Source: Trichosphaerium sp. ATCC 40318
Lineage: Eukaryota; Protista; Tubulinea
Length of the DNA: 64,000 nucleotides
Direction: 5' to 3'
Assembly: GCA_038496445.1 (NCBI GenBank)
Contig: JALMLS010000064.1
Coordinates: 1-64,000 of the forward strand
Shown piece by piece: positions 7,621 through 57,400 of the stretch. Each line of letters starts with the position of its first letter. The stretch's first letter is position 1. Made by a program: the position numbers and the translations under genes. The notes under the pieces were generated by a model. The model was given only the letters and a program-made list of their open reading frames with translations. It was not told the origin of the DNA and did no database searches.

Positions 7621-7773
7621 CAGAGAAAGAAATTCTCACGAAGTATCTCAGTACTACTCAAAAAAATATCGGAAACTAGCGCAATTTTCTTACTAAAAAG
7701 AACAAATTATAATAACGATTCTACATTAAGTCACCCTCCGGAAAAAGCCAAAGAACTTTCACCAAAACAACCA

Positions 7774-8283
7774 ATGCAACGCTTTATCATCCTTGCCGCT
7801 GTTCTATCTGTAGCCATTGCGCTCACCGCTACCAGTTGCGACTTTAAATGCGCTCGCAAGCACGTAACATGCCAGAAAGCCGATATCGCTCCAGGAGTAT
7901 GCTCTAACCAACAAGAACACTGTGTAAAGCAGTGCAACAATGGTCTTCCATCTACAAACGATAAACTCAACATGCTCATTAAATCCCAAGACGACCCAGA
8001 CAAAGACTTGCTTTGCGTAATACCTTGTGTATTCGAAGGTTTAATTTGTGAGCAAGCATTCAGCAGCAACAGTTCAATCTGCCGGAGAGCTTGGGGTGCA
8101 TGTATTAAGTTCATGGGATGCGGAAGCGCTGTCCCAACAGTAGCACCTGTAGAACGCATTGCTGAAGGCAACCCAAAATGCAAGCATGCTTGCCTTTTGC
8201 TAAAAGAGAAATGTATCAACCTTGGCTACAAACCAGAAGTCTGTAACGCAGTAAAACAAACCTGTGATGAACAGTGTCTTTAA
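7774..8283 (+). CDS. secreted Cys-rich protein with three C-x3-C-x6-C-x9/10-C-x6-C-x3/5-C modules
   Basis: Intronless 169-aa ORF with signal peptide MQRFIILAAVLSVAIA, 18 Cys in three modules, and AATAAA just after the stop. Confidence 0.85.
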   Translation: MQRFIILAAVLSVAIALTATSCDFKCARKHVTCQKADIAPGVCSNQQEHCVKQCNNGLPSTNDKLNMLIKSQDDPDKDLLCVIPCVFEGLICEQAFSSNSSICRRAWGACIKFMGCGSAVPTVAPVERIAEGNPKCKHACLLLKEKCINLGYKPEVCNAVKQTCDEQCL

Positions 8284-8639
8284 ATAAATCACTGTCATAC
8301 CCTCATAAAGCATTTTGTTGCATTCTGTTGCGCACGTGCCGGTTCGGCACTGATGAAACCTTGAGAAAATTGTAGTAAAAGACAAGTTATTTGATTGTAT
8401 TTGTTTCTTGGTTTTTTAGCCGTTAACTGCTCACAACTTACGCGATTTGCGACTACAGTCCTTGATGCCCACTTATATATATTCGTCCCTTATTGTATGT
8501 TGCACTTCACGGAAATATACCAGCAACGTTAAAAGAATATCTGGTTTTTTTTTCTATGAAAAAATAGTGTGTAACACGTTTTAGCATTGCTTTTTCTTTA
8601 TGGTTAAGCTTGTTTCATAAATAAGATAAACATACAGCA

Positions 8640-9346
8640 ATGACAGATCATCAAGAATTAGCTAGGGCGTTTGGTATGACAATAGATTGGGTAGACGGCG
8701 GTTTATTTCCTGATTACCAAGATAGAGACGGTACGTACCACCTTACTCGTTTGATGTGCATGTAATTACAAAATAAGGCTAACCATGTTTTTTACAGGCG
8801 ATATTGTGACGAGGGATAAATTAGAACATGCTTCACAAGTTGTTTTGAGCATTTTAAGCAACGAAGATCAAATAATGGCAGCTTTTGTCGCTGTGGCAAA
8901 TGAAAGGCCTAGAAAGAAGAGGAGGAGGAATAATAGAAGGAAAAGAGATAGAGATAGACACACTCAACCAGTACGTATCATAATCACGTGAAGAGAAAGC
9001 AATCTTTTACTGACATCTTTGAAAAACATTCATTGAAAATACTTACCTTTTTTTTTAGATTACAGTCACTGTAGACTTTGCACGTGCGAGGAAAAAAGTA
9101 TCACGTGTCAGATTACAACGTGTTAGACGTGGTCGCACAAATTATAATGGTGACCGTATCGAGGTGTTCGGAGAGAGTGACGAAAGAACGATTTGGATCA
9201 GAGAAATAGAGATGAATGACGAGGACCTTGTAGGCACATTACTGCATGAGGCTATACATTTCATTGGAAGATTTAATGGTAGAGAAATGAGTGAAAGAAG
9301 AGAACATCGCGTTATGCAATTACTCGGGGAAGACTGTGAGCTCTAA
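8640..9346 (+). CDS. small basic zincin-like metallopeptidase (HExxH), 3 exons
   Basis: Spliced ORF MTDHQELARAF...; basic tract RPRKKRRRNNRRKRDRDR; IWIREIEM..EDLVGTLLHEAIHF...REHRVM. Confidence 0.75.
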
Positions 9347-9936
9347 TACAGACAAGAAAACAAAACAAGCGAAGATATCCAATTGTGAATAAAACCAACA
9401 CCTTATTTATTAAAAAGTGACGATTAGTTTTGTCTATTTTTTTTTATAGTTTGCACGCTTTTCACCTTGATATCAAGGTTCTGTGTTAAGTCTTCTTTCT
9501 AAGATATTTTTTGGTCCTAGTTGGGTATTGTGGATACTATACTGGATTGACATAATCGTAGCAATTAACTTCATTCAAAAAAAAGTCACATTAGCACTGT
9601 CTATCTATCTCTTAACTTGAAGTGTCACATGACTATTCCTTAAACAAACAAAGACCTTAGAACATTATTTGTTTGGCTTGAAGGTTTAAACACTTCTATG
9701 GAAGCAGTTACAACTTTGACAAGTGTCAGAAAGTTGAGCTTTTTTTTCCAGCTTGGAAGTTCACCAACCTTTAAAACTCTTTATCTAATCACAAACTAGA
9801 ACACTGCATATTGAAAATAGGGGTTTGAAGCAGCAGTCAACAATAAAAAAAAGCTACAAGAGAAAACAAACAACACAAATCAAAAGGGAACTCTTAACTT
9901 AATTCTTCTTTTCTTTTTTTTTTTGTATTATTTATG

Positions 9937-12900
9937 CTACAATATAAACTTTATTTTACCTCTACCTATGGTACCCTTCCCCAAAAAGTTCTTTGAGGCA
10001 CGTCTGTCACCTGAAGGCTTTTTATAAGAATCCCATGCAGAATTAGTTCGTTTATGTCTTTTTTGCTTTTGTGTCTGAGGTGATGGTTCAGGTGCAAGTT
10101 CAGCTTCTGAAACTGACTCTTCTTCGTCCTCAATATAATCCTCGTTTTTACGAACTTTTACAATATATACAGGCAATATAAGAGAGTCTACAGAAACAGT
10201 AAGTCGCATGTCAAGTGTAGCTTCAAGAAGAAAAAAACGCGACAAAAAAATGTATCCCATTTGGGCTTCGTATTTTGTTCTTTAGTCTCGTGGTCACCAC
10301 GAAGAGCTTTTGTACTGTTTTTGAAATTTTGAAAAACATGACAAGAGCAAAACAACTCTCATCACATGGATGGAGAGTGAAAGGCGGTTAAGTCAACGTA
10401 CAATCGAACATCACAATTTCGTTTGGAAGTGATTGTTTTGCCCATTTTGCTGGAAGTCCTTCTTCGTTTACTACAGCATAATGTGATTGGTATCCAGCCT
10501 TTACATCAGCGCCAACCAGAGATTGTTTACCCTGTGGATCTTCTACAGCAGGATATACATTACCTGGAGCAGCATACTAAAAAAAAACCTGTGTTAGTTT
10601 GTCGCTTCATTTCTCAAACTAGCCGTCTTTTATAAAGCTTATAAGCTTTGTTTAGATAACGTAGTATGTGGGAAGTACGCATAACTAATTTCTTGGTATT
10701 TTTGTGTAGCTGGTTTGGAAAGAGCAAAAAAAAAGAAAAATCTAATTTTTTTTGGTTGATAGGTGACTTGACAGTCACTTTTGTCAACATGTAGGTTGAC
10801 AAAGTGAAATAAAGTTACTTACACATATAACCATAGTATTGCAGTCACCTTCTGGAATATTTCTCTGGGCATAATTGGCAGAGGTAGTCAAGTAAACGCC
10901 TTCTCCATATGAACCTAAATAAAAAATTTCAGTATTTTGTATTGATCATCTGGTACCACCGGAAGAATCAGGTATATCAAATCCCGATTGAGCTATCTCT
11001 ATAGCCATATCATAAGAGCAACAATGAACAGCAGGAAATATAGGTATATCGTATTGACCAATATATTTGTTCCAATCCGTATTTTTTACAAGATTATCAT
11101 AATTCTCCATTACTTGTTTACGACGTTCAATTATATCTGTTGGTTCTTGTTCATTTGTTTTCCAAGTATCTAATTTAAAGAATTTTGGGAAACATCTATG
11201 ACTTGTTGCCAAGTTTTGTTTCTGGAATTGAAAAAAAAGTAAGTAAACACGTGTTTTTTTTAAAAGTTTGGTTAGGGTGTTGTACCGCTTGTTCAAACTC
11301 TTTTAGTAAGTGTTCGTTATAAATTGCCTCAGCCGATACTATTTCTAAACCTCTACCGCCCATGTTCTTTAGGAGACCATTTAACCTCTTGAGTTCGTAA
11401 GGTTGTTGAACCTTTATGTCCAAGTCAGGTTTTTTTGGTTCACGATGAGTAGTATGTTTTTATTTGTACCTCTTCGTCTCTTTTCACGTGACAAGTTTTA
11501 TACTCATTAGTAGAATGACCAACAACCCTCCATAGTCCATATGTGAGGAAGTTATCTGAGAATTTCCTAAATGACGTATTTGATTAGGAACTTAACTAGT
11601 TTTAGTTCGGTTTTCGTTCTCGCACCATGGGAACAGTGAACTTCCTAGAGACCACCATGGAGAACCCTTTTTAGGCTCACACTTTGCTTGTAGGGTCGTA
11701 ACATATCTGGCATAATCTAAAAGAAAGAATAAGCTTTCAAAACGAGATAATGTTGATGCTTTTTAAACAGTACGTACTTGCTTTGAGCTTGGTTGTCTTT
11801 TCAAGTATTTTTTTATGTTCGTGTTCAGGAACAAGCATTCTCTCCAAGTCCTCTTTGCGTAGATCAAGAAATTGCAAACCACTAATACCATTAGACAAGC
11901 CAACATCAAAAAAAAAGCTCAAGCACGTGCTGCGCATGCATTGTTTTTCGGAAAAACTGGAAAAACTTTATTTCCAAAAATCTGTGAATAAATGTTTTTT
12001 CATCGTACGTAATATTGTTGCTTTGAAAAATCTTTGCAGCATTAGGAGATATTGGTGAAACAACGCTAAAAACATCTTTAACACGCATAAAAGGAGGAGC
12101 AAGCTTCTTCCTCTTAATCTTCTTAACAGCAACTTCAACTTCAAGCTCAATACCTCTGAACGTCTTAAGAACGCCCTTACCAACATCACGTTCCCATGAA
12201 GCATATACAGTACCCAATTTAGGTAAGTAAAGAGCACCAAAACCGTGTTGAAGGTTTGAAGCCCATTGACCTGAATACTTGATGCCATCGGAGTATTCAA
12301 AGAATCCTTGACCATGTTTGAGATCTTTAACCCATTCTCCAACATATCTAGCACCGACTAGAAGCGTCATTGTACCATATCCATGCTTTTTATCTTGTTT
12401 CCATTTACCAACATATGTACAACCATTTGCTACTTTCAGTGTACCCTCTCCTTCACGCTTACCCATGACATAATCTCCTTTATACTCAGCGCCGTCAGGC
12501 CAAGTGAAGAGACCTTTACCATTGTACTTTCCTTGATTCCATTGTCCAGTATACACAGACCCATCGGCGAAACAGAATGTTCCCAAGCCGTGCCTTTTAT
12601 CATGTTGGTACTGACCAACATACGAAGCACCTCTACTTCCAGTATAAGATCCTTCTCCATGTCGTTTACCATCAAGCCATTCTCCCAAGTAGGTTCCTCT
12701 TTGAGCGTACGCCGCTGTACCTACGCCATTAGGTTTACCATTCTTTATCTGACCTTTGTATACCCACCACCGGTACTTGATCGTTCCGCCTCTGTTTTAA
12801 AAAATCACGTGTAAGTTCACGTGATTAAATAGGAAAAATGTACTTACGTTGCGCCTTGGAATTTCCAAACTCGTTTTGATTTTCGAAGTCTTTCTTTTTG

Positions 12901-15900
12901 TGCTATAACTAGTCTTGATGACTTCTGAAGTACATTCTTCTTTTTCTTTATTGTAGATGCTCTTGTCATTGTCTTTGTTATTCTGTTGTTAACGCGGCGT
13001 TCCATTGAAAGTCTATAGACCTCTCTTTGAGCCTTAAACACTGGTGAGAAGGAGAATTACTACAAACCAAATGCTTTGGCTTGTTTTCTACTAGTTGTTA
13101 CCTTTACTTCATCTACCTTGCTCTTCTTCTCTTCACCCTCAGGTCTAGGTACAGCTGCGCTTTCAAATCGTTTTCTTTCCTGTTCTTCTTGAGCCTGACG
13201 TGTTTGTTAAAAAAACAATCAAAATTTTTTAAACGAAAATGTTGTGCCTTGCGAGCTTGTTCTTTTTGTCTTTCTTGTTCTTCTCTTTCTTTTTGTTCTT
13301 GTTCTCTCCGCCGTCTCTCTTCTTCTACTCTCGCTTTTTCAGCTTCTGCCCGTTGTTTTTCTTTGGCTTTTCTTCGTTGACGCTCAGCTTCCTCTCTTCG
13401 TTGTTTCTCTTCTAGTTCTCGCTTTCTAAGAATATCTTGCCTTCGTTTTTCTTGCCTTTCCTGAAGATACATTAACGTCGGTTAAACTGTGGTTGAAATA
13501 GTACCTGAACTAGATATTCACATAACCTAACGGCAACGTATCTTCTACATAGACTCTGAAGATATACAGAAGCGTGGTGTCGAGCAACGGCCGATTTTAC
13601 TCTTTTTCTACATAGAAAACCTCTCACAACTTTTTGGATCTTGATGGCATATGGCTCCATGCACTCTGCACGAAGCTCTTCAAGTACTTCCAGCTGTTGA
13701 GTAAAAATTAGTACATAAAGAATATTTACTTAGAGTGTTGATAGTACCGCTTCATGGCGAAGAAAAGCCTTTGTTTTACCAATCTGACAATCCTTTTTTT
13801 TCAAACCAGCAGCTTTCATTATCTTTCTGCAAGTCCTCTTTATATCCCTAGATTTACGACTTGCAACAATACCAAACCTTTGGTAAAAGATTTAGTACGA
13901 AATACGAAAATTAGAATAATACCTGTGCGTGAAGACATCGAAATCCAAACGTATTGGATATCCTGATTGTCTTATTTTTATTGTTTCTAAAACACCAGAA
14001 CAACTTAGTTGCTCAAGCACTTGTCCACCATGAAAAACATTTGGTGCTCTGTAACGATTAGGTTTAATACACCTACGAGTATATTTAGATCACATTCTTT
14101 CACGTCAGCGAAAATTACCTGATCCAATGAGGATCTGTCTCATTAACAGTTTCCATCAAATCATCGAGTTGAAACTAGAAACATACATTAAACAAAGAAG
14201 ATATTGTCAAATATCTAAGTACCTTAAACTGTGTTCCTACTGTAATTGGTTTGCCACGTATGACTTCAGCGGTCTTTATAAGGTTTTTAATATAAGGATC
14301 AGTGCTATGTCTTGTCATGGTGACAATGTCTGGCTTTAAGGCGTCTTTGTTTTTATCCAAAAAGCCTTTTGCATTGTACATTACCTTAAAAGCCAGTTAA
14401 GATAACAGGTTTGCTGGGTTGAAGTCGGTTGAATTTGGTACATACACGTTCAGCATAGTGAGATATTCCAAAGTTACCATTAGATATCTTTGGAGAAAGG
14501 AAAGAGTCATGAGATTCATGTTGACCTTTAATCTTATTCAAAAAAGAAGTATCTGTTCCTTTTGGAAAAGTGCACTCCTCGTTAAGTAGTTCTAGTACAC
14601 TTGCATGCTAACGTGAACAGTAAGTAATTAAGACAGAAGAGGCTCTATTAGGATTTTCACAAACGTACACCATGAGCAATGAGATCAAGTGTTTTTTGGT
14701 TGTCATCAAAGGGAATTGCTTGAAAATTTATGCCTTCTTTTTGACATGCTTCAAGTTCCCATTTGAAGTTATGTCGATTGTAATGTTGCTGGAAGGTCTC
14801 ATTCGCGAAATTAATACAAAATTGCTCAAAACTGTTGGCCTAAAGAAGAAATCTTAGAGTCAGACATGGTCACGTCAACACAAAAAAAAAGTTGGTTGAT
14901 GCAACTTACCTTGAAATTCTCGAAACCAAAAATATCCAAGAGCCCAATAAATAACTGACTATTTGTATTATTTATAGTGTTATTAATCTTTACTACTATC
15001 CAGTCGAATAAATTACTGTACAAAGCTTTTGAAAGGACATCTCTGACATCAACAGCCTAAACAAGCTTAATTTTTAAATCAGATTTCTTCATACTTGTGA
15101 GGCCGAGTACGGCACTATATACACTTCTTTTGCGATAATATTACGTCTTGTGAGCAAAATAGATTGAAGCTCTGTTGGATCTACACACAGTAGCTTCGCA
15201 ACAATAAATACAATCTCAGGATTTTCTACTTGAGCCTAAACAAAGAACTTGTTAAGTGTTGTTTCCAACGCATTTTTTTTTCGTACTTCCTCCTTCTCTG
15301 AAGACCCGATATTTAGATTACCCAGATGAAGGATAGCGGATAATACCCTGAAAATAAAATCCCTCTCCTCTTTTCCAATATTAATACGAGCCATAGCAGA
15401 GATGACTTGCTTCAGTTCTTTCTATTCGAGAAAAAAAAAATGAGCAAAAAAAGTCACGTGATTTATGGACAAAGTACTTCTTCATTGCGTCCTTGAATCA
15501 TCACACATCCACTACCGTTAAGGTACCGATAGTCTCCGACTCTTTTAAGGTTATATCGCATCCTTTGCTGCACGTAAGACAAAAGAATAAAGAAAAAAAA
15601 GATCTACTCACTTAAATTCAGCATCAGTTGAAGCCAACATCATATAAAAAATATGATAATTACGCTCGCCATGACCTTGATTGATAACACGTGTCTAGAA
15701 GATATGGGTAAAAACAAAAAAAAACTCACAAAACAAAAAGAAAAAGTTTTTCAGCCAATCCTTCGTGTGACTGTCCCCTCCACGTGCCTACCTTTTCCAG
15801 CAAGTAATTATCAATCCTTGCACCTACCAAGCCGCCCTGTCTATCAAATTGTAGTCGTATAAACTTCCCCTACAATAAAAAAAATTGTCAACACTTTTTT

Positions 15901-16945
15901 TGGGTATTTAATCATTTTCACTCACAAAGCGACTGGAGTTATCGTTTTTAGCAGTCTTCGCATTACCTAAAATAGGGTTAATATATGTACATAAATATGG
16001 GCCTTACCAAACGCTTCGAGTATTGGGTTTGTGCCTTGGATTTGGGCGCATATTTTGTTTCCTTTTGAATCAGAACTGCCAACGAACGACAAGTACTTCA
16101 TAGCGATTTTTGCTGTTTCGGTCTACATTGAACAACTTAGAACCCATTACCGCGCTCTCTTTATAGTCTATCATTACCTTTCCCGCGCCAGACTCTCCAC
16201 TAATCAAAATAGCTTGCGACTTGGTATCTAAATAATCTTAGCAGTGACATTGTCGAAAACGGTGCGAACCTCTTAGTAAGTTAACGTAGCACCTATCCGC
16301 TAAAGCAAAAATGTGTGGCTTCTCTTCTCCATGTGACTTATTTCTATAACTACAAATACAAGTTAAAACGCATTAAAACTAACCTATAAGGCGGTATACG
16401 CACGTTTTCATTGTTTTGTCATCGTACAATGGTAATTGTTTAAAAGGATTAACAGCAATTACAATACGCCCTGTGTATGTCTACAAAACGACGCTTTGAA
16501 TAAGATTTTCACGTGATATGACGGTTCAGCGCACGTATATAATATCCTTTAAATATCTCTGTCTTATATTGTGTAATACAGTAGATGCATGAAGTTCTGA
16601 GAGGTACAGCATATCCTCTACGTCTCTAAGCACTGATTTGTCCAAAATTTTTCTAACATGAGCTTTTTGTACTTCTATTTTTTTCTATTCGTTTTAATCT
16701 CTTTGTTAGGGGTACACGTGATCAGTATAGTGGTATACTGCGTACTTACCTTGGTTCTCCAAGCTTGCACCTCAAATAGCTCAAAGGTGAGTAGATTTTC
16801 TACTCTACCCACCTCCCATCCTTCTTCCGCATGTCTAAAAAAAACAGGCGAGCCCTAAACCGGTTTTGGTTTTGCCGGGTTATTATGGTTTCTTTTGGGT
16901 ACGTACTGGCGTGAACTCCAGGGAAATAGATTCCCTATATGACAT
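9937..16945 (-). CDS. unconventional myosin: SH3-like N-terminus, motor, 2 IQ, ER/K single alpha-helix, ~8-9 MORN repeats, SAM domain, PARP-like ADP-ribosyltransferase domain, charged tail (a last exon may extend to ~9473)
   Basis: ATG at 16945. Motor motifs [47 protein letters not shown] and [15 protein letters not shown] YxGxWxxxKxHGxG. [41 protein letters not shown] / [14 protein letters not shown] / [17 protein letters not shown]. Tail junctions traced in phase; the one at ~13040-13090 is ambiguous. Confidence 0.85.
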
Positions 16946-17920: not shown

Positions 17921-20181
17921 TCAATAACCACCTGAATCAGTAAAACAATTATGATGTTTTCTTGCCGGAAGTTTAAGGCCAATATTAGGTATTAACTCTT
18001 GTTCAACCAATTCTGGAATACTAGCAAATATTTTATGCTTGTCATCCTTAAATCTATCAAAAAACAGATGAGTACAATATGTTTGAATAAAAACAATAAT
18101 GAAGACAGATGTCTGTACCGTATGTAGTATCCTTTACCATACTGTCCCCAAATCCTATAATGATATATTCTGTCTTTTTCTTTCATAACAGACAAAATAA
18201 ATGGGCACCCGGGCCTTGGTGTGAGGTGAGTAAATAGCAACATGATATGAGAGAAAAAAAGAAAGAACAAAAGGTTACCTTGTTGTTGACAATCTAATAA
18301 GGAATGTACCAGGTTGTGTCCATTGCAGTCTGTACTGGGTAGTTTCTCTATCAATAAATCCATGAAAATACCTGTGGCATAACTGTCAAAACCCAGCAAT
18401 TTGATATTGATAATTTCACAATGAAGCAAAACTTACTCCTGTTGATGTAACTGTTGAATAGTTACGATAACATCTCTGCAGTATTTCTTTGACATAAAAG
18501 GTCCAAACCAATGCAAGGCAGCATTGAAGGTTTCCATTGTGACAAAAGGTGTTTTTTTACAAGTAATACGAACATGACGATTGCCTGAGTTAATGATAGA
18601 AGCAAGAGTTGGTACTTGTACTGTTAAACCTAATTCATGTTATTCCTCATAAAGAATAGATGGTCATACACATATAGTCTTCAAGACAATCAAATGATAA
18701 TCCATCTTCAACTTCAAACTCAGTGAGACCAAGCTCACGTGATAGCAAGTCAGCAAAATTGTGTTGAGAATGTGTTGTTGCTTGCCATTCCGTTTGGAAT
18801 AACACTGGATCCTCAACACCAAGTACTTCATTGTCAAGACAAAAGTATTTGCACCAGAAAGATCTCCCAGCTTCATCTTCAATAACACTTTCAACAATAG
18901 CATCACTCAGCTTTTCTACTACACAACTGAAGGAAGGTCGATATTTATGTTGGTGGTGCCAACATAATTGAATCAAGTCTTTCATCAAAGGTGATGTGTC
19001 ATCTGGTATGTCAGGCCTGTCCACATGGATGGATCTAGAACTGTGAGTAAGAAGGTTAACATTGACAAAAGATCGAGAGCTCAGTACTTTTTGTGGTGAT
19101 CCAAAAAGGATTGGGGAGGTGATTTGCCACTGATTAACTGCCAAAGTATAAAACCAAAGCTATAAACATCCCTCATTTCGTCCGTCTCTTTGGTTAGGAC
19201 AACCTCAGCTATCCAAGGCTTAATTTCTACTATACTGTTTGATGCTTACCTTCTTTTGCACTCTCATCGCCCCTAATCATTGTATTAAATGTCTCATGTC
19301 CATAGTTTGCTATTTTCACATTTCCGTCATTACCAACCTAGGCTGGTCCGTTAGATGAGCTTCACAGTTTGAGATAAAAAGGTTGTTTGATTTCACATAC
19401 AAGAATGTTTGAAATCTTTAGGTTCCTGTGTCCCATCTTATATCTATTATGAAGCCATTTCATACCAATGGCTGTATCTCTAGCTGTTTGTAATCGAAGC
19501 TTTAGAGGAATGCAATCAAACTTCTACCAATGATTCAGAAATGTGGGCATAAAAAAATGTGTAAAAAAATCTAAAAATACCTCATCAATTAATGTCTGAA
19601 CACTAGTGTAGCACAACTCGGAAATGATCTTTATTGTTCCATCATTGATGCTTGTACCAAATGTGTTGACGATATTTGGATGATTAATTTGCCTGCAATC
19701 AAGATGAGCACGTGAGATTCAAAAAAAAAATCGAAGTTTGAATAGTACGTAAGGAATGTCACTTTCTTGTGGAACGCTTCAACCCTGTTGTGATGTAGCT
19801 TTACGTTGTACTCTTTTACAGCCACTGGTGTGTTCTTAATCTTGCCTACAAAGATATAAGCCTCGAATATACTAATAAACGGCCAAATACCTTTGTACAC
19901 TTTCGCATGTGCGCCAGAACCTATTAATTCGGTCTTGTCATAGATTATGTCGTTATCTTGTATTTCTGTACGTTTATCTTCCTAAAACCCCTTCAGCGGC
20001 TCACCGTTGTAAGGGTAGGTCGTTTTCGCCTTTTAATTTGCATTTCCGTACATTTACACTCTCGGTTTTGCTTTCCGCCATAAATACACGCTGCTGACTT
20101 GTACTCGTTAAAAATGGAAAAACATTTAAGGCATGGTTTAGTAGCAATCGAACTTTTATTGTAAATCACGTGCGCAACCAT
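17921..20181 (-). CDS. SHK-type TKL (pseudo)kinase with C-terminal SH2 domain and N-terminal Cys cluster
   Basis: IGSGAHAKVYKG..VAVK, HPNIV, GHRNLKISNIL, KIANYG, DVYSFG, RPDIP..LIQLCW..RPSF. SH2 YFHGFIDRE..GTFLIRLS..CPFILS..HYRI. Ends DSGGY-stop. Confidence 0.85.
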
Positions 20182-35377: not shown

Positions 35378-37399
35378 TTAACATTTTTGAAGTCTCGTTA
35401 TTGTCCCTTTGAAGCTTTCTGATGACGACGAAGACTCAGGATCAGCAACAGTTTTTGATGACAACTTGGTGCTCGTGATTGGCGTTGTTGTTTCAGAGTG
35501 GCTATCATCGTCATCACTATCACTTGAGCTATCGCTAGCGCTGTCAGAACGAGTTGGAATGCCACTATCCGCGTTTGTAGAATCATCATCGTCGACACTA
35601 ACATTCTCGAGCATCTTGCTCTTCTCCTCTGTCTTCGGCGCAAAGTAATCACCCAAAAGCAATAAAGGTCCCGTCATACCCGTTGAAACTACAGCTAGAG
35701 ATACTAGAGCAACAACACCGCCATCGCCTATCAACCCAATCTCGGTGCCTTTCAAGCTGATAATAAGTACCAACAAACCCCGACAATTCAACAAAGCTGC
35801 TGTCTTGAAGGCCGTGTACCACTTGAAACCACTTAAACGAACGATAAAAGTAAGTGACAGCTTACTCAATACACCAAATAGAATAATGACAACGATACCA
35901 GGGAGGTGTGATGCCTTTAATAGTCGAAAATTTGTCTTGAGTCCACTGAAAGCCAAAAATATAGGTAAAAGGTACAACATTGTAAATCGCTTCACGATTG
36001 CAAGAGTCACTCTAATGTTACCTCTAAATGGTGGGAAAAGTACGCCGAATATAAATGGACCAAGTAGGTAAGTAAAGCCGAGGTAATTAGAGGCTACACC
36101 GGCAAGTGTTGCACTCACTGTTATGAATACAATAACGTCTGTGTAATTCTCCATTTTCGACGCCTCAAACTTTTCAATTTTGATCAAGTACTTCCAAACA
36201 TGATGTGCAATAAAGCTGAAAACGCCAATACCTAAAAACCCGAAGTATAAGTAAAAAGTAACAAACTACGCAAAACAAACTGAGATTTTTTTGAAAAGAA
36301 CGATTCAGACAAAAACACGTGATAGATTGACAGCTTACCGATCACACCCAAAAGACGTAAAGGAAGTATCCATAGAGGGTCTCCTTTATGTACAACATCA
36401 GCTATACCGAGCAAGCCAAACATTACTCTGTCAATAGGCGTAAGTGACACAACAGCTTTATTCAACCGGTAAAAAGAAATGAACGTACAAGGTGACCAAA
36501 GCAGACGCGCTAATAACAGTCCTTCCAAACTCAGTGTTCGTCTTCTTTTGCTCTTGAAGGATTGCTGCAGCCACTGGTAAAGCTGAAGTTGCCAACGCAG
36601 ATGCTAGTATAAACATAAAGGCGATAGTATTTCCTCCAGAGGCTGTAGTTCAAAGTGAGGTCATATTACATTGAATGGAAAAAAAACTTGTTTTATCACA
36701 AAAGTTGGTTGTACCTATAAACCCTAAACTATCTGATCGCGATAGCCAGTATCCAATAGGTGCACCACCTATCCCTGGTATTAAAGAAGCAGCTAATCCT
36801 ATCCCAATTATTTTCAACCATTTGCCACTCATGGTCTTGTAGCTAAAGTTCACGCCGATCTAATGTAAAAAATTAGTTTCATTCAATAACAACTTACACG
36901 TCTGTTGTCAACACGACATTTTTAACCAGAGCTTTAAAATAAATATTAATAGCACCATCGAGTAACCAGTTACGCTATAAACACGAGAACGGAGGAACCA
37001 GCGGAAGCAAAACAGAAAAAGAAAAAAAAATTGGTGATTTTTATCCAAAAAATAAAAACTGAAATTGTGGCCACTTACAAGCAAAGAATAAAGTATAAGA
37101 CCTATAGTCCCGAAAACAGAAATAGTATCAACGTTTTTAGGTGGAAATAGGTCGTTGAAAAGGTCTACACCAAAAGTTGAAGGACCAAGAAGTAAACCTG
37201 CTAGAATTTCACCAATTACGCGTGGCTGACGTATAACGCGCTCAAACACCCAACCGCATGTTCTTGCGGCAAGCCAAATAACGGCAATGTTCAACACAAC
37301 GTGAGGCAAAAAATCTAGAGGACCATCGTCCGCTGTATCACAGGCTAAATCTGTTGCATTTAACGTAGAATTGAGAGTTGATGGAACTGTGATGTTCAT
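35378..37399 (-). CDS. CPA2-family cation/H+ antiporter (KHA1/CHX-like) with acidic Ser-rich tail
   Basis: RQPRVIGEILAGLLLGPS, SAFPVAAAIL, LLGPFIFG, LLPIFLAFSGLKTNF, ALLNCRGLLVLII; multiple TM segments. Confidence 0.9.
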
Positions 37400-43329: not shown

Positions 43330-46300
43330 TTAATGGAAGCCGTAAAAGTCTCCAGACGGAGCTGTCGACATGTGTGGTGGAACACCGCCAGGTGGCATTG
43401 TGTTAACAGCTGGGTTTGTCATCATACCAGGATGAACAACACCAGGAGGAGGATTAGTCATCATACCAGGGTGAACACCAGGTACCATCATGCCTGCGAA
43501 CCATAAAGTCAGAAAAAGAATGACACAAGAAAAAGAACTTGTTTTATAACGTACCAGGTCCAGGGGCAGAGTTGTAGATTGCTGGGCCACCGGCAACGTT
43601 AGCAGGTCCTGCGTTTGGAGCACCTTCCTCAGCAGCAACTGGAGGAGCAGTCTTCTTTTCAAGGTCATCAAGACGTGTCGAGTAATTGCGGAATATCTGT
43701 ATCATAAATGGGAAGATGTACTCAGTCATCTTGTAACGCCAAGCAAGCTCAAGGACGACATCTGGACGAATAAAGTCGAAGCAAGTGTACAAACTGGCCG
43801 CAAAGGCGTGAGGGTTGTTGTTCTCGCAGAAAAATCTGAGCAAGTTTTCTACCACTTCAGGATTGCCTGAGGTAGCAGCGGCCTTGATAGCATCATCGTA
43901 CAAAGAGTCATCCTTGGACAATTCCACGGCTTGGTCCCATCGTCCGTTTTTCTACACAAGCATAGGTAAGCACTGTGAACCAAAAAACGAGGGCGAATAA
44001 AACAAGAATAAAATAGTTTTGTTGCGCATAAGATCTCATAATCTGTATACTGTCATTTTTGACCAGATCCGTCAAACAGGACTTCACTGGTCTCCAGAGT
44101 TGGTCATTTGTCATCATTTGCGATGAAAAAACGGAAATGCAAGGAAAGAATAAAAAGAGATCATTTACCTGGTAAAGCAATGAAGCAATACGTCTGAATT
44201 CAACCAATTCGTGTTTCTCGAGTTTACGGGCAAGGCCAAGAGCGTCAAAAGCGTCAAATTCTTCAATAGCGGTCTTGAGGTCTTCAAAATTTTCTTCTTC
44301 AATCCACAACTCCATCAATGCCTCGTTAACAGGCTTGGTGTTTTTCTAGCAAAAGGGGTCAACATAACTTGGCAAAAAAAGATTCGTGATATTCGTACCT
44401 CTTGAACAGATTTGAGGTAAGCTTTGATCAAAGGCAAGTGAGAAAGGCGGCGAGCGACATTCACAACTCTAGCAGAGTCTACACGTCCCTTGAGCGTCAA
44501 TAAGAGTTCAGAAACAAGTCCTGGGTGCTCTCTAAACATTAAACGTTAGAAACTAATTCATTGTTTCAAAAACAGTGATTTGTAAACGTACTTGATGTAA
44601 AAGTCGATTGCGCGGTACAATAATTCGTTGTTTTTGACTTGTTGTACGCTCTCACGGAACTCTGTTGGTGTCCAGGCATCTACAGAGTGTGCAATCATGA
44701 CGCGAATAGCGCGATCGAACTCCTTATCAGCGGTGTACAAGTAAGCCAACTCGCTCCATTGCAAGTTCTTTTCGCAGACCAAGCACACTTTACCAATACT
44801 GATACGGCCGTGGTAGCGTTTCAAGTGATCTAAGAGTCGCTCTGGTTTATACTGAGAGTACAATACGGCAAGGGCAGTGAAAATTCCTTTGTGTGCGTTT
44901 GTGAGGTTAACACCATCTTCCATGACCTTCAACAATTGATCAAAGAAACCGCGGTGTTCGTAGTAACTAAACGAGAAGAAAGTAAGCAAACAGCATAATG
45001 GATGGTTAAGTGTAGAGATAAAACGTACCGAATGAGTTCTTGAAGCTCGTCACCGTGGACAATAATGTGCAAAGCACATACACCAGCCAAACGGAATTCT
45101 TCGCCGTCAACACAAGCTTTGTTGACTTCTTTCCATGATACGATATTGTTGGCTTTGCGTGCAGCATCAACAGCCTGTTGGTAGTCTCCAAGTTTTACCA
45201 AGGTAGCAGCCATACGGCCAAAGTTGTTAATGTTGTTGTAGAGCTTTTTGGCGGCTTCATACATGCCGTCGTTGAAACATACGTCACCAACTTTTTGGAT
45301 CTAAAGAATACAATGTTAACAACCAACTGAATAAAATTCCATAAAAAGTTTGTTTCGTACTTGAGCACAATTTGGACCTGTGATGAACTCTTCCATATCA
45401 GCTAGTTGATCAGTCTTTGCGTATGCGAAGACAAGTTCAGACTCAATACGTGGCTCGCGGACTTTAGTACGGCACATTTTGAGGAAAGGAATCAATTCCT
45501 TGTAAAGGTCTTGTTCTTTGGCCTTTTGTACTACTTCCTGGTAGAACTCGTGATCTTCAGAGCGACGGAAAGCATCTGTACAAATACGTTAGCCTTGCCA
45601 TACCATATCACCAAAAGTGATGTCCGTACCGATAGCTTCAGCAACCTTTCCTTGGTCGAGTTGAGCCTTGGCGAGCTTACTCCATACGTCATTCTCACCA
45701 ATCTCCTCGGCGAATTCAATAGCGCGGTCGAGGTCGTTCAAGTGTTCAACAAGAACTTGAATAGCAGAAGTGTTGTGCTTGTTGTTCTTGTAGATGGTGA
45801 ATCCCTCCTCGTAAAACTCAGCACCAATAGCAATATTAGCAATATCAGGTGCATCGTAGTTATCCAAACGGTTAATGTATTGCATTACGCGATCACGTTT
45901 GTTGGCCTAAAAAAAAGGAAGAAGTAAGTTTCAACTTGTCTTTAAAAATTTGGGAAGCATGTTTAAAGATGAAGAGACATACCTTGATAGCTGTCAAAAT
46001 GAGCAAGTTTTGCAAGTTACGGTTGTTGCTGAATTGGGAGTTATCCAAAACAATCTTTTCCAAGAGTTCGATCAACTCATTTGGAAGCTTGGCAACCATA
46101 AAAGCTTTGACAGTTGTTGATACTTGTTCTGGGTTATCTGACTCAGGGAGAGCGGTTTGTACGACTTGGTTGACAACATGTTCTCTGTTCTCGTTGTCCT
46201 CTTTCAATACGAAAGCCCACAATTCGGCATCTTGACGCTCAACCAAATATCTTGCTTGGTTCTTGAATGAAGCAAACTTGTTTGTAACTTCAACAAGCTC

Positions 46301-49300
46301 GTAATCGCATAGACCACGTTTGTAAGCAACGAAAGCCAAGTGAGGGTCACGGTTTTCACAATATTTACCGACAACCTTGCTATCATAGAACTAAAACAAA
46401 CAGTAAGAAATACACCAAAAGTAGTTGCCAGAAGAAAAAAAAAAGCAAAAAGAAAGTTGTGCAGTGAGCATACCTGATTCTCTGTCAAGAACTTCTCTGG
46501 GTTGTTGTGTTGATCGATGTAAATCTTGGCGATAGCGTTGTGAAGGGATGGTTCTCTGCTACCTTCAGCAAAGCGTGCTTCGAGCCATGGTTGAAGAATC
46601 TTGAGACGGTTTCTCTTCTCAACAGCTTCAACGAGTTTATCGACTGGGCACAAGTTGCCAACAGCGTCAATAAGTGTTTTGATGTACTCTTCGCTGCAAT
46701 CAACGTCAATCAAGGCACCAACAACAAGAGGTGTATTAACAGGATTGATGCTCTTGACGTAGGCTTCGATGTATTTCTCCATACCGCCATCGTACAAGTA
46801 TCGTGTCAAGTCTTCAACAAAGTTATACTTGTCACAGACAATGACAAGAGGAAGTTGATTTGTAAGGCGAGCTTCCTAAAAGACTACGGTAAGTACATCT
46901 TGTCTATAAAACAGTACAAAATAAGCAAGCAAGGCAGTACCTTTAGGAAATCCTTTACGCGCTCAGGATCGTAGTGTGTGCTCTCGCGAACAATACGCTC
47001 GATTTCCTTGTCTTGAGGAGGTGTAAAGCGAGCGGCAGCTTGAATATACTAAAGAAGAGTGAGTAACTTTCTACATCCATTTCTTTGGAGGACATACCTT
47101 GAAGTGAACTTCTGGGTTCTCGGAAGTACTGACAATAGCTTGACAGAAGTAAAAAATGCCATCCCAGCTTTGGAACTCTTCGAAGAGCTTAATGAGACGC
47201 TCCTCTCCAATTTGTTCACAGTATTTAGCTGCGATTTTGACTACAGTTTGCAAGTTTTGTTGAGGGTTATTGCTCAACATCTCTCTCAAACAGTCGTAGC
47301 TGTCATCTGCAGATTGTGTAGTCAATTGACCAAAGAAGTTGATCAAAAACTATTCAAAAACAGCGTAAGTAACAAGCGCAAGCAATAAACACAAAAGAAA
47401 ACAAATCGGTTCGTACGTCAGTGCTGATTTGGGAAGCGTTTCTCAAGACACGTTTGACATCAGTCAATTCATCGTATTGTTCCAAGGCCTAAACATAAAA
47501 AGGTCAACTCAAAGGGCATGGTTTTTAATCAAGAGGTTTGAGCTAAAACGTACACGTTGGTGTAAGCCTACTTGCTCGCAAAGAGCGGCGATGGCCTTGT
47601 TGTCAAAGTGGGTGAACATCTCGTTACCCAAAATAGCATCAGCAACAGCAACACCTTGAGGGCGATGGTTCAAGTTGATTGTCAACAATTTTGTTTGTAA
47701 AGCGCCTTCTTCTGGCTTGTTCTTGCTCAAGATATCAAGGAGGAAAGATGTGCACTCTTGAATCATGCCACGGCTCATAAAAGCATCAGCGACAACATCA
47801 GGATCTACCAAAGCACCACCCTGTACAAAAATAGTGAGATCAAAAGCAAAAAACCGTAGAAAACCCAAGCAGTTAATCGTGCGTTAGACACCGCATACGT
47901 ACCTCAGCAGTGCACACCATCTTGGCAAAGTTTACGGAAGCTTGTGGGTTGCTGCTAATAACAGCTTGCAACAATTGCATCCAGTTTGGTGTGTAGTTTT
48001 TGGACTGGGCGTAAACGACGAGTTTAGGGAACTGTCCAGTCTCAGCGAAGATCTGTACGACTTTTTCTTTTGCGTCAGCGCGGTAGTAAATAGATAGAGC
48101 CATGCGAATATCAACAGCACGAGCAATATCACCCAACTCTTCGCTGCATTCCAACTAAAACGGGTCGTTCAGTAAACCATCAAATGGGTAATAAAACTTC
48201 AAAAAAAACAAAGCGAGATTATTTACCTTATCTTCTTTGAGCCATTTTTCTAAGAGATCTTTGCGGCCTTGTTGTAAAACAGGTCTGGCGAGTTCAAGAG
48301 ACTCAATCTTGTTCAATTTACCATGCTCCAAAAGAGTACCAAAGTATTGTAACAATGGAGATGGTTTACCGTGTTCAGCAGGAATAGATTGGAAAGTTTT
48401 GATTGTGTTCATGTTACGAATCAAGTTCTGCAAGAAAAACGATGTAAGTACAAAAGGCAGTAAGGGAAAATAGCGTTATTATTATACGTACACCAGGCGA
48501 TTTTGCAGCTACTCTAGCAGCGCCAGGCCAATCTCTGGATTGCAATCTTTGTTGGAATTCTTGCTTGAACAAGTTGTCGGCACCAGGCAAGTTAGCTCTA
48601 GCAGCGATTGAACGAGCCAATGTAGTGTCATTCAAAGTGGACAAAATGTATCGAATAATATTGTTTTCATCAAGAGATACAGACAAAACCTAAGCAACAT
48701 TCGTTAATACCCGACACGAAATGTAATTACTTGAAAGCTTTGTTTTTCAAAAAAAAGCGAAATAATTGTTTTCGCATCAAAAAATAGCACGTACTTGTCC
48801 AGTGCGGCTAACACCCATAACACCGTTATTTTTAGTGTCGGGTACAGTGACGAATATTGTTTGTTCGCTGATACGACGCATGTAAATCAAAGAACCGTGC
48901 TCAACGTCAAAAATGTGTAGGAAACCGAATTTGGTAATCATGTATACGACACCATACTTCTCAGACACTTGCATGGACACTGGAAAATCGTCCGGAGAAT
49001 CCTGAGGGAACAATATATTTTGCGCCTTCTTTTGGTATACAGGCGTTCCAGAACCAACCTCTGTGATAAACAACTATACATTTTGGAGTGAGTACCCAAG
49101 TTTTTAAGAAGGAAAAAAAACATATTTTTCGGGACGTTCGAGTTGTAAGAAACAGAAATTCCAAACGTTTTCAAGTAAATCAACGCTAAAATTCGTACCT
49201 TTGATTGCGCTGGGCTTCTAGATGCAAAACAAAACAAGCTAATAGAGTTACCAGCAACGTTAAAGCGAGTGAACGAAGCGGCGTGTCCACCTTCGAGCAA

Positions 49301-55638: not shown

Positions 55639-57400
55639 TTAGAAGTTTATAAAGTATGCACTGTTTAGTGCTTTGATTCCCTTCTCGGTTACGGCTGTGT
55701 TATTTATATGAATTGTGTGAACACTTACAAGTGCTTGTATTCCTTCATCTGTCACTGAAGTAGAATCAAGATAAATCTCATGAACACCAGCCAGCACTTT
55801 GATACCTTCATCAGTAACTGCAGTGTATCTAAGATGAATGGTATGAACACCTGCCAACGCTTTGATGCCATCATCAGTAACTGAAGTGCTATCCAGATAA
55901 ATGGCGTGAACTCCCGCCAATTCTTTGATGCCATCATCAGTAACTAAAGTTCCATCCAGATATATAGTATGAACTCCTGCTAAAGCTTTAATACCTTCAT
56001 CTGTAACTGAACTACCAATAAGATTGATAGTATGAACTCCGCTAAGTGCTTTGATTCCCATGTCAGTAACGAAAGTTCTAACAAGATTTATACTGTGAAC
56101 TCCTGCCAATGATTTGATTCCCTCATCAGTTGTTGATGTTTCAAACAGAAAAATGGTATGAACTCCAGCCAATGATTTAATGCCTTTAGCTGTGACTGAA
56201 GTGCCATTTAGATGAATGGTGTGAACACCTACCAGCGCTTGTATACCTTTATCAGTTACTGAGGTACCTTTCAGATGAATGGTGTGTACGCCTGCTAATG
56301 ATTTGATTCCTTCATCAGTCACCGAAGTGTTATCAAGATGGATTGTGTGCACTCCCTTTAAAGGCTTTATGCCTTCGTTAGTTATGTAAGTTTCATTGAG
56401 GTGAATGGTATGAACTCCTGCCAAGCATTTGATATCATCATCAGTCACTGAAGTGTCATCAAGGCCAATAGTATGGACGTTTTTCAATGCCCTTAGGCTT
56501 TCACCAGTGACTGATGTGCCACGTAGATGAATAGTATGAACTCCTGACAGAGCTTCTATACCTTTATCAGTTATGAAAGTGCCTTCTAGATAAATGGTGT
56601 GAACTCCAGCAAGTGCCTTGACACCCTTATCAGTTATTGAGGTATGGTTGAGATTGATAGTATGAACTCCAGCAAGTGCTTGTATACCTTCATCAGTGAC
56701 GGGAGTGTAATCAAGATTAATGGTATGAACGCCTGCCAATGCTTGTATTCCTTCATTTGTCAAGAAAAGTGCGCATGTAAGGCTAACAGTGTGTACTCCA
56801 GCTAAAGCTTTGATACCCTCGTCAGTTATGGAATAGGTGTAAGTGAGGTGGATTGTGTGCACTCCAGCTAAGGCTTTGAGGCCCTCATCAGTCACTGAAG
56901 TTGTGTCAAGATTAATGGTATGAACGCCAGCCAATGTTTTGACACCTTCGTCTGATACTGAAGTCCCACCAAGATGAATGTTACGTACTCCAGAGAGCAA
57001 CTTCACAATCTTATCAATATCTTCAACTCTAGCAACACAAACATGTGTATGTCTGAGTACTCCCGGATAGTTGCTGATTGTTTTTGCCGATTCAAAGTCT
57101 GATATTCTGATGCGATTGTACCCAACAATATTGTGAATGAGCGAAGAAAAACGAGAACAACTTATAGCTGCTGAAACCCTACAGGTATTTATCTGACATA
57201 AAATATGCGCCAATATCTCATTTGGTAGGTTTAGGAGGTTTAACGTATCACTAAGAACACGTGTTAAAAAGAGAATCAAAACAACTTTAAATAAAATGAA
57301 ACAAATATGAGTTTGGAGTAAGTGTCTTTTAAGCAAAATGTTTTGCTAATGTTATAAAACAATAACTAGTGTAGCCGTACTTCTTTGTAGATTCACTCAT
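55639..57400 (-). CDS. F-box + 21 tandem ~21-aa leucine-rich repeats
   Basis: Exon 1 MSESTKN, intron 57380-57251, then LLNLPNEILAHIL (F-box) and 21 copies of VHTIxLxxTSVTDEGIKALAG. Confidence 0.92.
55660..56985 (-). repeat. 63-nt (two 66-nt) coding tandem repeat array, 21 units
   Basis: Periodic gtatgaactcc / atcagt motifs on the + strand, matching the LRR units. Confidence 0.9.

Follow-up and report, generated by a model that had tools for sequence, protein, structure and literature searches.

A candidate orphan myosin gene of Trichosphaerium sp. with a predicted tail of MORN repeats, a SAM-like region and a divergent PARP-type ADP-ribosyltransferase domain

Enzyme-bearing myosins are known from class III, which carries a kinase, class IX, which carries a RhoGAP domain, and class XVII, which carries a chitin synthase, while myosins with a single alpha-helix rich in glutamate, arginine and lysine (ER/K) are known from classes VI and X and from Dictyostelium MyoM. 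Here we present a computational analysis of the first 64,000 nucleotides of contig JALMLS010000064.1 (assembly GCA_038496445.1) from Trichosphaerium sp. ATCC 40318, referred to throughout as the window, in which the minus strand from 16945 to 9937 appears to encode an unconventional myosin with a tail ending in a PARP-type ADP-ribosyltransferase (ART) domain. Like the myosins of classes III, IX and XVII, the predicted protein joins a motor and neck to a catalytic or signalling domain, an arrangement that places activity on actin; unlike them, it ends in a C-terminal PARP-type ART domain and has MORN repeats in the same chain. Class III myosins are reported to work with, and bind, MORN-repeat partners that are separate proteins (PMC4379085). 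With the class VI, class X and MyoM proteins the gene shares a long E/R/K-rich stretch directly after the IQ neck, a likeness drawn here from composition.

Three further groups of proteins offer partial parallels to the tail. Orphan myosins with SAM or SH2 tails have been described in Monosiga brevicollis (Odronitz and Kollmar 2007, PMC2375034), and these are similarly lineage-restricted and carry tail domains unusual for myosins, SAM among them; however, PMC2375034 names no MORN or PARP domain, and the likeness drawn here is one of tails. Tankyrases resemble the gene in that it too has a SAM-like region ahead of a PARP-fold domain that carries His, Tyr and Glu, and differ in that here about 130 residues of linker separate the two regions and the SAM assignment is weakly supported; exon-wise Pfam scans found no ankyrin repeat, the further tankyrase hallmark, anywhere in the gene. 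The best sequence match to the ART domain comes from a dinoflagellate family of MORN-PARP proteins (P0099 and about 30 related clusters), in which MORN repeats are followed by a PARP domain with an aligned triad, and which provides a precedent for the order of the tail. In contrast to the gene described here, these proteins come without a motor, IQ motifs, an ER/K stretch or a SAM-like part, are only about 22% identical to it in the ART domain, and retain the Gly that follows the His, along with other positions at which the myosin tail differs.

Our preferred reading, to which we give an even chance in its complete form, is that a single gene encodes an orphan unconventional myosin of about 1,620 residues, composed of a motor, two IQ motifs, an ER/K stretch, a basic linker, eight MORN repeats, a SAM-like region and an ART domain that keeps its triad. 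That a single gene spans the motor through to the tail we regard as likely, and the locus probably represents a real and new orphan myosin architecture; what is directly observed is that the domains occur in this order on a single strand, that the key motifs are intact, and that the tail is spliced and expressed. We regard it as an unconventional myosin with a new tail and not as something categorically new. The terms MORN, PARP and ADP-ribos are absent from the searchable main text of the large myosin surveys PMC3942036, PMC5583752 and PMC2375034, and MORN and PARP are absent also from the supplements of two of them, in keeping with an original prediction, made from the DNA letters, to which no described myosin class with an ART tail was known.

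Gene model and the transcript of its tail

Between 16945 and 9937 the minus strand holds stop-free coding segments that read in succession as pieces of a myosin motor, IQ motifs, an ER/K stretch, MORN repeats, a SAM-like region and an ART domain, in the place where the original prediction had put them. They were joined by a dynamic programme in which splice sites were weighted by seven confirmed introns and Pfam-verified segments served as anchors; an unanchored run of the same kind was unstable, over-splicing or skipping real exons, and was replaced. The resulting features are as follows.

9937-16945, minus strand: whole gene model of 33 exons and 1,620 codons, followed by a stop codon at 9939-9937
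16917-16945, minus strand: tentative exon 1 with its ATG at 16945, the sole upstream ATG with a frame reaching exon 2
16750-16834, minus strand: exon 2, an N-terminal extension ahead of the motor (open frame, good acceptor, GTAAGT donor)
13757-16621, minus strand: myosin motor domain in about 19 exons (Pfam Myosin_head, PF00063, pieces in successive exons)
13505-13693, minus strand: neck exon with two IQ motifs (Pfam IQ)
13102-13460, minus strand: ER/K-rich stretch in two exons, divided by a modelled intron at 13234-13188 (composition)
13033-13101, minus strand: modelled 69-nucleotide intron containing an in-frame TAG near 13060 (GTAACA donor, AAG acceptor, frame kept)
12848-13032, minus strand: basic linker exon joining the ER/K stretch to the MORN repeats (open frame, GTAAGT donor)
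12131-12790, minus strand: eight MORN repeats (Pfam MORN, PF02493) within the 783-nucleotide exon 12791-12009
11778-12100, minus strand: SAM-like region, made up of the end of the MORN exon and exon 11917-11778, with a modelled intron at 12008-11918 (weak matches)
11412-11716, minus strand: linker between the SAM-like and ART regions in two exons, transcribed and spliced, of low model confidence
10144-11354, minus strand: divergent PARP-type ART domain in five exons (Pfam, BLASTP, hhalign, Foldseek)
9940-10143, minus strand: C-terminal tail with acidic and then basic runs, predicted disordered

In the model every intron is GT-AG, no internal stop is present, and one frame stays open between the start codon at 16945 and the stop at 9939-9937. 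The unconfirmed introns (n = 25) measure 38-97 nucleotides and resemble the confirmed ones in size and donors. G+C content is about 38%, and a composition scan found no break across the gene except at the purine-rich stretch coding for ER/K. A tblastn search of the window with the tail and MORN proteins found no second copy of either, and neither exon 2 nor the basic linker exon has a match in Pfam.

The tail of the gene is represented by a transcript. When the exon bearing the triad His was searched with HMMER against 1.84 billion representative proteins, the one real match was a 388-residue protein, P0001, at 100% identity, and its source is a single contig of 1,195 nucleotides, L001, from Joint Genome Institute (JGI) sample 3300016894. 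The contig aligns to the window in exon blocks at about 99% identity and removes seven GT-AG introns of 42-246 nucleotides.

9911-11848, minus strand: span of transcript L001
11777-11717, 11625-11567, 11469-11412 and 11285-11222, minus strand: introns confirmed by L001
10956-10915, 10822-10577 and 10401-10188, minus strand: further introns confirmed by L001

The tail is thus expressed and spliced over a stretch that begins midway through the SAM-like exon and ends with the stop codon, which bears out the earlier hand-splicing from 11848 onward, and the tail of the splice model reproduces P0001 at 388 of 388 residues. A second protein returned, P0002 (907 residues), reached an E value of 4e-10 to the His exon through six short stretches; this protein consists of six near-identical repeats, and the match was taken as chance because repeats inflate the score.

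Further observations concern the introns and composition of the gene. Introns are very short and regular (38-97 nucleotides where modelled, 42-246 where confirmed by transcript), with mostly GTAC, GTAA or GTGC donors and TAG or CAG acceptors, a pattern that may aid in placing the host organism. On the plus strand, positions 12001-14000 have strongly negative GC skew (-0.20) and AT skew (-0.16), as fits the purine-rich sequence that codes on the opposite strand for the ER/K and basic segments.

The gene has the usual marks of the myosin superfamily, namely a complete Myosin_head domain, intact nucleotide-binding motifs and an IQ neck. Positions 1-679 of the Myosin_head profile are matched in exon order, several exons lying individually above the cut-off, with positions of about 180-193 read by eye and 534-581 covered by the model only. 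The motifs were located as follows.

16120-16198, minus strand: P-loop GESGAGKT, split by an intron, intact
15926-15946, minus strand: switch I, intact
14919-14936, minus strand: switch II DIFGFE, intact
15125-15127, minus strand: TEDS-site Glu, model residue 373, 16 residues ahead of DVLSK at 15041-15027 (coordinates from the exon table of the splice model)

Since the TEDS-site residue is Glu, the TEDS rule is satisfied by an acidic residue, and the earlier account of an intact P-loop and switches with Glu at this position was confirmed by the motif check. Compared with Protein Data Bank (PDB) sequences, single motor exons score about alike against myosin classes XI, II, V, X, XV and VII, and no class affinity of the motor is visible in these sequence comparisons at single-exon resolution. 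Furthermore, Pfam found none of the tails typical of known classes (MyTH4-FERM, DIL, kinase, RhoGAP, chitin synthase, coiled coil and so on) in the tail exons or in P0001, which yield IQ, MORN and sub-threshold PARP only.

The regions that follow the motor agree in large part with what had been proposed for them. The neck exon matches Pfam IQ in two stretches (E 2.9e-10), giving the two motifs expected, and after the neck the richest 80-residue stretch is 66% E+R+K, which matches the predicted ER/K segment of about 80 residues in composition; the stretch as a whole, roughly 100 residues, probably forms a single stiff alpha-helix. Eight or nine MORN repeats had been counted, and Pfam finds eight stretches in the MORN exon (E 2.1e-41, 137.8 bits). 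In comparison with other MORN proteins this region is 36-40% identical, the best matches being generic proteins at no more than 40%, and the MORN reading frame, used as a query against proteins, turned up no entry of its own species.

The SAM domain of the prediction is weakly supported. Neither exon matches Pfam SAM_1 or SAM_2, while exon 11917-11778 has just three PDB matches, all of them to the SAM domain of SHIP2 (E 0.023-0.07) and covering its C-terminal half, and BLASTP pairs the same stretch with the Pfam-verified SAM domain of P0021, a MORN-SAM-RING protein (E 0.03). These matches come from the second exon, which a modelled intron divides from the first half of the putative domain. The SHIP2 and P0021 matches agree with each other yet are weak, and we therefore call the region SAM-like, a weakly supported assignment.

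The C-terminal ADP-ribosyltransferase domain

No Pfam or PDB sequence match was obtained when the exons of the ART domain, which corresponds to residues 106-320 of P0001, were searched singly. Searched as the complete protein, P0001 has no match among PDB sequences or in NCBIfam, and its residues 200-318 match Pfam PARP (PF00644) with a significant E value of 1.5e-5 and 25.1 bits. A link to the wider family is provided by P0099, a MORN+PARP protein found by the MORN search, which has a clear PARP domain (76 bits). BLASTP aligns P0001 with P0099 (E 1e-4) such that each of the triad residues His, Tyr and Glu pairs with its counterpart, and hhalign between a profile of 30 members of the P0099 family and residues 106-320 of P0001 gives the same triad pairing over 185 columns (E 3.4e-4, probability 38%). 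In an alignment of 51 sequences, composed of P0001 and 50 PARP proteins, P0001 shares 10 of the invariant columns overall, seven of which are occupied by H194, G222, Y224, C247, G252, E300 and P311. All three residues of the His-Tyr-Glu triad proposed for this domain thus fall in invariant columns of the alignment, at the following positions.

11024-11026, minus strand: triad His, H194 of P0001
10892-10894, minus strand: triad Tyr, Y224 of P0001
10418-10420, minus strand: triad Glu, E300 of P0001

The remaining invariant columns, occupied by W45, T78 and D84 (residues 45-84, about 11700-11480 of the window, minus strand), lie upstream of the catalytic core in a region of low model confidence, and could reflect a conserved N-terminal extension of a PARP subfamily or an accident of alignment.

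A search for the ART fold by structure, set beforehand as a check, gave a result in line with these alignments. AlphaFold2 on the single sequence of P0001 reached a predicted local distance difference test score (pLDDT) of 33, and with the 51-sequence alignment a mean of 63, the core strands and helices lying at 85-95. When this alignment-guided model was compared with the PDB using Foldseek, the matches were PARP catalytic domains: PARP12, tankyrase 2, the pseudo-PARP of TASOR, PARP10, ZC3HAV1, PARP15 and PARP14, with E values of about 1e-7 and TM-scores of 0.55-0.66 normalised by target, and in the viral library they were PARP-domain proteins of giant viruses and phages. PARP12, PARP10, PARP14 and PARP15 provide the best structural matches (TM-score 0.55-0.66) at an identity of 12-16%. 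In the human proteins of this type a hydrophobic residue replaces the triad Glu, whereas the myosin tail keeps it. The catalytic domain of tankyrase 2 is also among the best fold matches, identity to tankyrase in the structural alignment being 10-12%. On the basis of these sequence alignments and the predicted fold, we read the last domain as a true but very divergent member of the PARP fold.

Kinship with the dinoflagellate family appears distant. Of the residues invariant in the P0099 family, only H, G, Y, C, G, E and P recur in the catalytic domain of P0001, and at 22% identity and the hhalign probability given above a close relationship was not found; the fusion to a myosin tail is probably independent of this family. 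The MORN+PARP proteins themselves (P0099 and P0123-P0154) have about 350-590 residues, and most are from the transcriptomes and genomes of dinoflagellates, a Durinskia record among them; Symbiodinium entries named Parp12 or Tiparp are among the relatives that have no MORN repeats.

Weighing one gene and an active enzyme

Several points count against the reading of a single gene for an ART-bearing myosin. With respect to the gene model, the anchors of the splicing programme were picked by the analyst; exon 1 needs a weak donor (GTTCAC), which makes the start codon at 16945 tentative; and the motor-to-MORN and MORN-to-SAM junctions are covered by no transcript or protein record, so that the fusion of motor, MORN and SAM-like parts is a model. 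Neither the basic linker exon nor the MORN reading frame, each scanned against JGI contigs, led to a sequence bridging the junctions. The matches to SAM are weak, with E values of about 0.02-0.07. With respect to the enzyme, the PARP score of 25.1 bits falls under the Pfam gathering cut-off of 26.7 bits; the residue after the triad His is Cys, where Gly is invariant in 30 comparison proteins; further family-invariant positions are changed or lie inside a 4-residue deletion after the Tyr; the fold result amounts to compatibility and is not independent proof, because the input alignment consisted entirely of PARP proteins; and the protein collections yielded no orthologue or relative of the tail from which conservation of the architecture or the triad could be judged, a word-based search with P0001 likewise returning no relatives of 213-679 residues.

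The uncovered junctions leave room for a pair of neighbouring genes in the same orientation, one a short myosin (motor, IQ and ER/K) ending at the TAG near 13060 and the other a MORN-SAM-PARP gene starting at a Met of the linker exon, where in-frame Met codons are present. The junction is spanned by no transcript, L001 being the sole transcript recovered and confined to the tail, and MORN-PARP and MORN-SAM-RING proteins occur elsewhere as free-standing chains. However, the next open frame begins within some tens of bases of the TAG, too short a distance to hold a 3' end and a promoter, and the TAG itself is preceded by a good donor (GTAACA) and falls in a modelled intron of the size usual in the gene. 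No polyadenylation-like signal of the AATAAA kind was seen by eye after this TAG, whereas an A-rich AATAAA-like stretch is found downstream of the real stop at 9937. We consider an arrangement of two genes rather unlikely. For the single gene, all parts share one strand and the gaps between them are 38-97 nucleotides; of what had been claimed for it, the splicing of the tail is upheld by transcript, and transcript support reaches upstream as far as 11848.

A pseudogene or an assembly join could also mimic one gene, in which case the locus would be decaying or chimeric. The weak exon 1, the lack of orthologues and a motor part with no database protein point in this direction, but they are set against 33 open exons with intact catalytic motifs, a tail that is expressed and correctly spliced and for which the model is identical to the transcript-derived protein, and a composition that shows no break beyond the purine-rich ER/K stretch. 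We consider a locus of this kind highly improbable.

A different question arises if the fusion is real and its last domain is a non-catalytic pseudo-PARP, which would serve as a binding or scaffold module for nicotinamide adenine dinucleotide (NAD+), ADP-ribose or protein, as in TASOR or ZC3HAV1. Both of these (6tl1 and 2x5y, respectively) are among the best fold matches, and the sub-threshold Pfam score, the change of the invariant Gly beside the His to Cys, the loss or deletion of other family-invariant positions, and the lack of relatives that could show purifying selection on the triad are all compatible with such a module. In PARP domains the Gly following the His binds nicotinamide through its backbone. 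With this Gly replaced by Cys and other invariant positions changed or deleted, the description of the domain as apparently catalytic is insecure: the triad named in support of it is kept, while the Gly and other invariant positions are lost. To our knowledge TASOR and ZC3HAV1 do not have the His-Tyr-Glu triad, and in the myosin tail the whole triad survives at about 20% identity, which is hard to explain without selection on an NAD+ site. The intact triad therefore argues for a working site, the Gly-to-Cys change leaves doubt, and catalysis is plausible from the sequence but unproven. A pseudo-PARP we hold to be unlikely, and we retain the single myosin gene with a triad-keeping ART domain as the preferred reading.

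Genomic setting and implications

The genes around the locus are cellular in character. Just upstream and on the same strand, protein-kinase exons (Pfam PK_Tyr_Ser-Thr pieces) occupy 18650-19981 (minus strand), followed at about 18079-18220 (minus strand) by a segment with PDB matches only to SH2 domains, which are weak (E 0.085-1.3), giving the order kinase then SH2-like. About 1 kilobase of DNA poor in open reading frames lies between these exons and the start of the myosin, so that the kinase-SH2-like locus is probably a separate gene, and a class III-like N-terminal kinase on the myosin was set aside as unproven on the same ground. On the other side a convergent neighbour has open segments at 8625-9343 (plus strand) that end near 9343 and contain an HExxH-like motif, with no Pfam match, and at 7621-8280 (plus strand) there is a Cys-rich open frame of 220 residues, also without a Pfam match and overlapped by an opposite-strand frame of 164 residues. 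Other cellular genes, all on the minus strand, are a clathrin heavy-chain repeat (46204-46809), a piece of a Na+/H+ exchanger (36908-37399) and an LRR_6-rich frame (55639-57336), the last of which is intron-free and unusually long at 565 residues. No Rfam family reached its gathering score in a scan of the whole 64 kilobases. A myosin of giant-virus origin was considered and dropped, because this gene is interrupted by spliceosomal introns and lies among cellular genes. A human origin of the DNA was dismissed as well, in view of introns of 38-97 nucleotides and the absence of human proteins from the matches to the tail.

A mechanism can be outlined from the order of the domains. The whole region would be transcribed as one molecule, and the motor would carry or anchor the tail on actin, with the IQ neck, which would bind light chains, and the ER/K helix together forming a long lever or spacer. 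The basic linker and the MORN repeats may dock the protein on a membrane or a partner protein, membrane targeting through MORN being suggested by analogy; the SAM-like part may permit self-association, and the ART domain would draw on NAD+ to modify the protein itself or targets close by. For a role at phagosomes or against pathogens, suggested in the original prediction, the analysis gave no support. A bolder proposal, which we offer tentatively and consider somewhat doubtful, is that this gene is the founding member of a new myosin class that has its own enzyme as cargo, the MORN repeats placing an active ART domain at membrane-actin interfaces where it would mark cytoskeletal or membrane-proximal targets.

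The value of the finding is limited at present, in that this is an orphan gene with a fusion half modelled and an activity inferred. For PARP biology it offers a very divergent domain in which the triad is kept and the Gly beside the His is changed. The combination of domains would be an addition to those recorded in the large myosin surveys cited above. Myosins with an enzyme in the same chain are few, and the kinase of class III, the RhoGAP of class IX and the chitin synthase of class XVII each founded a field; if the reading is true, a motor would here steer ADP-ribosylation in space. In the actin system this modification is familiar chiefly as a form of attack by bacterial toxins, and an ART domain borne by a motor would point to an endogenous and spatially directed use of it.

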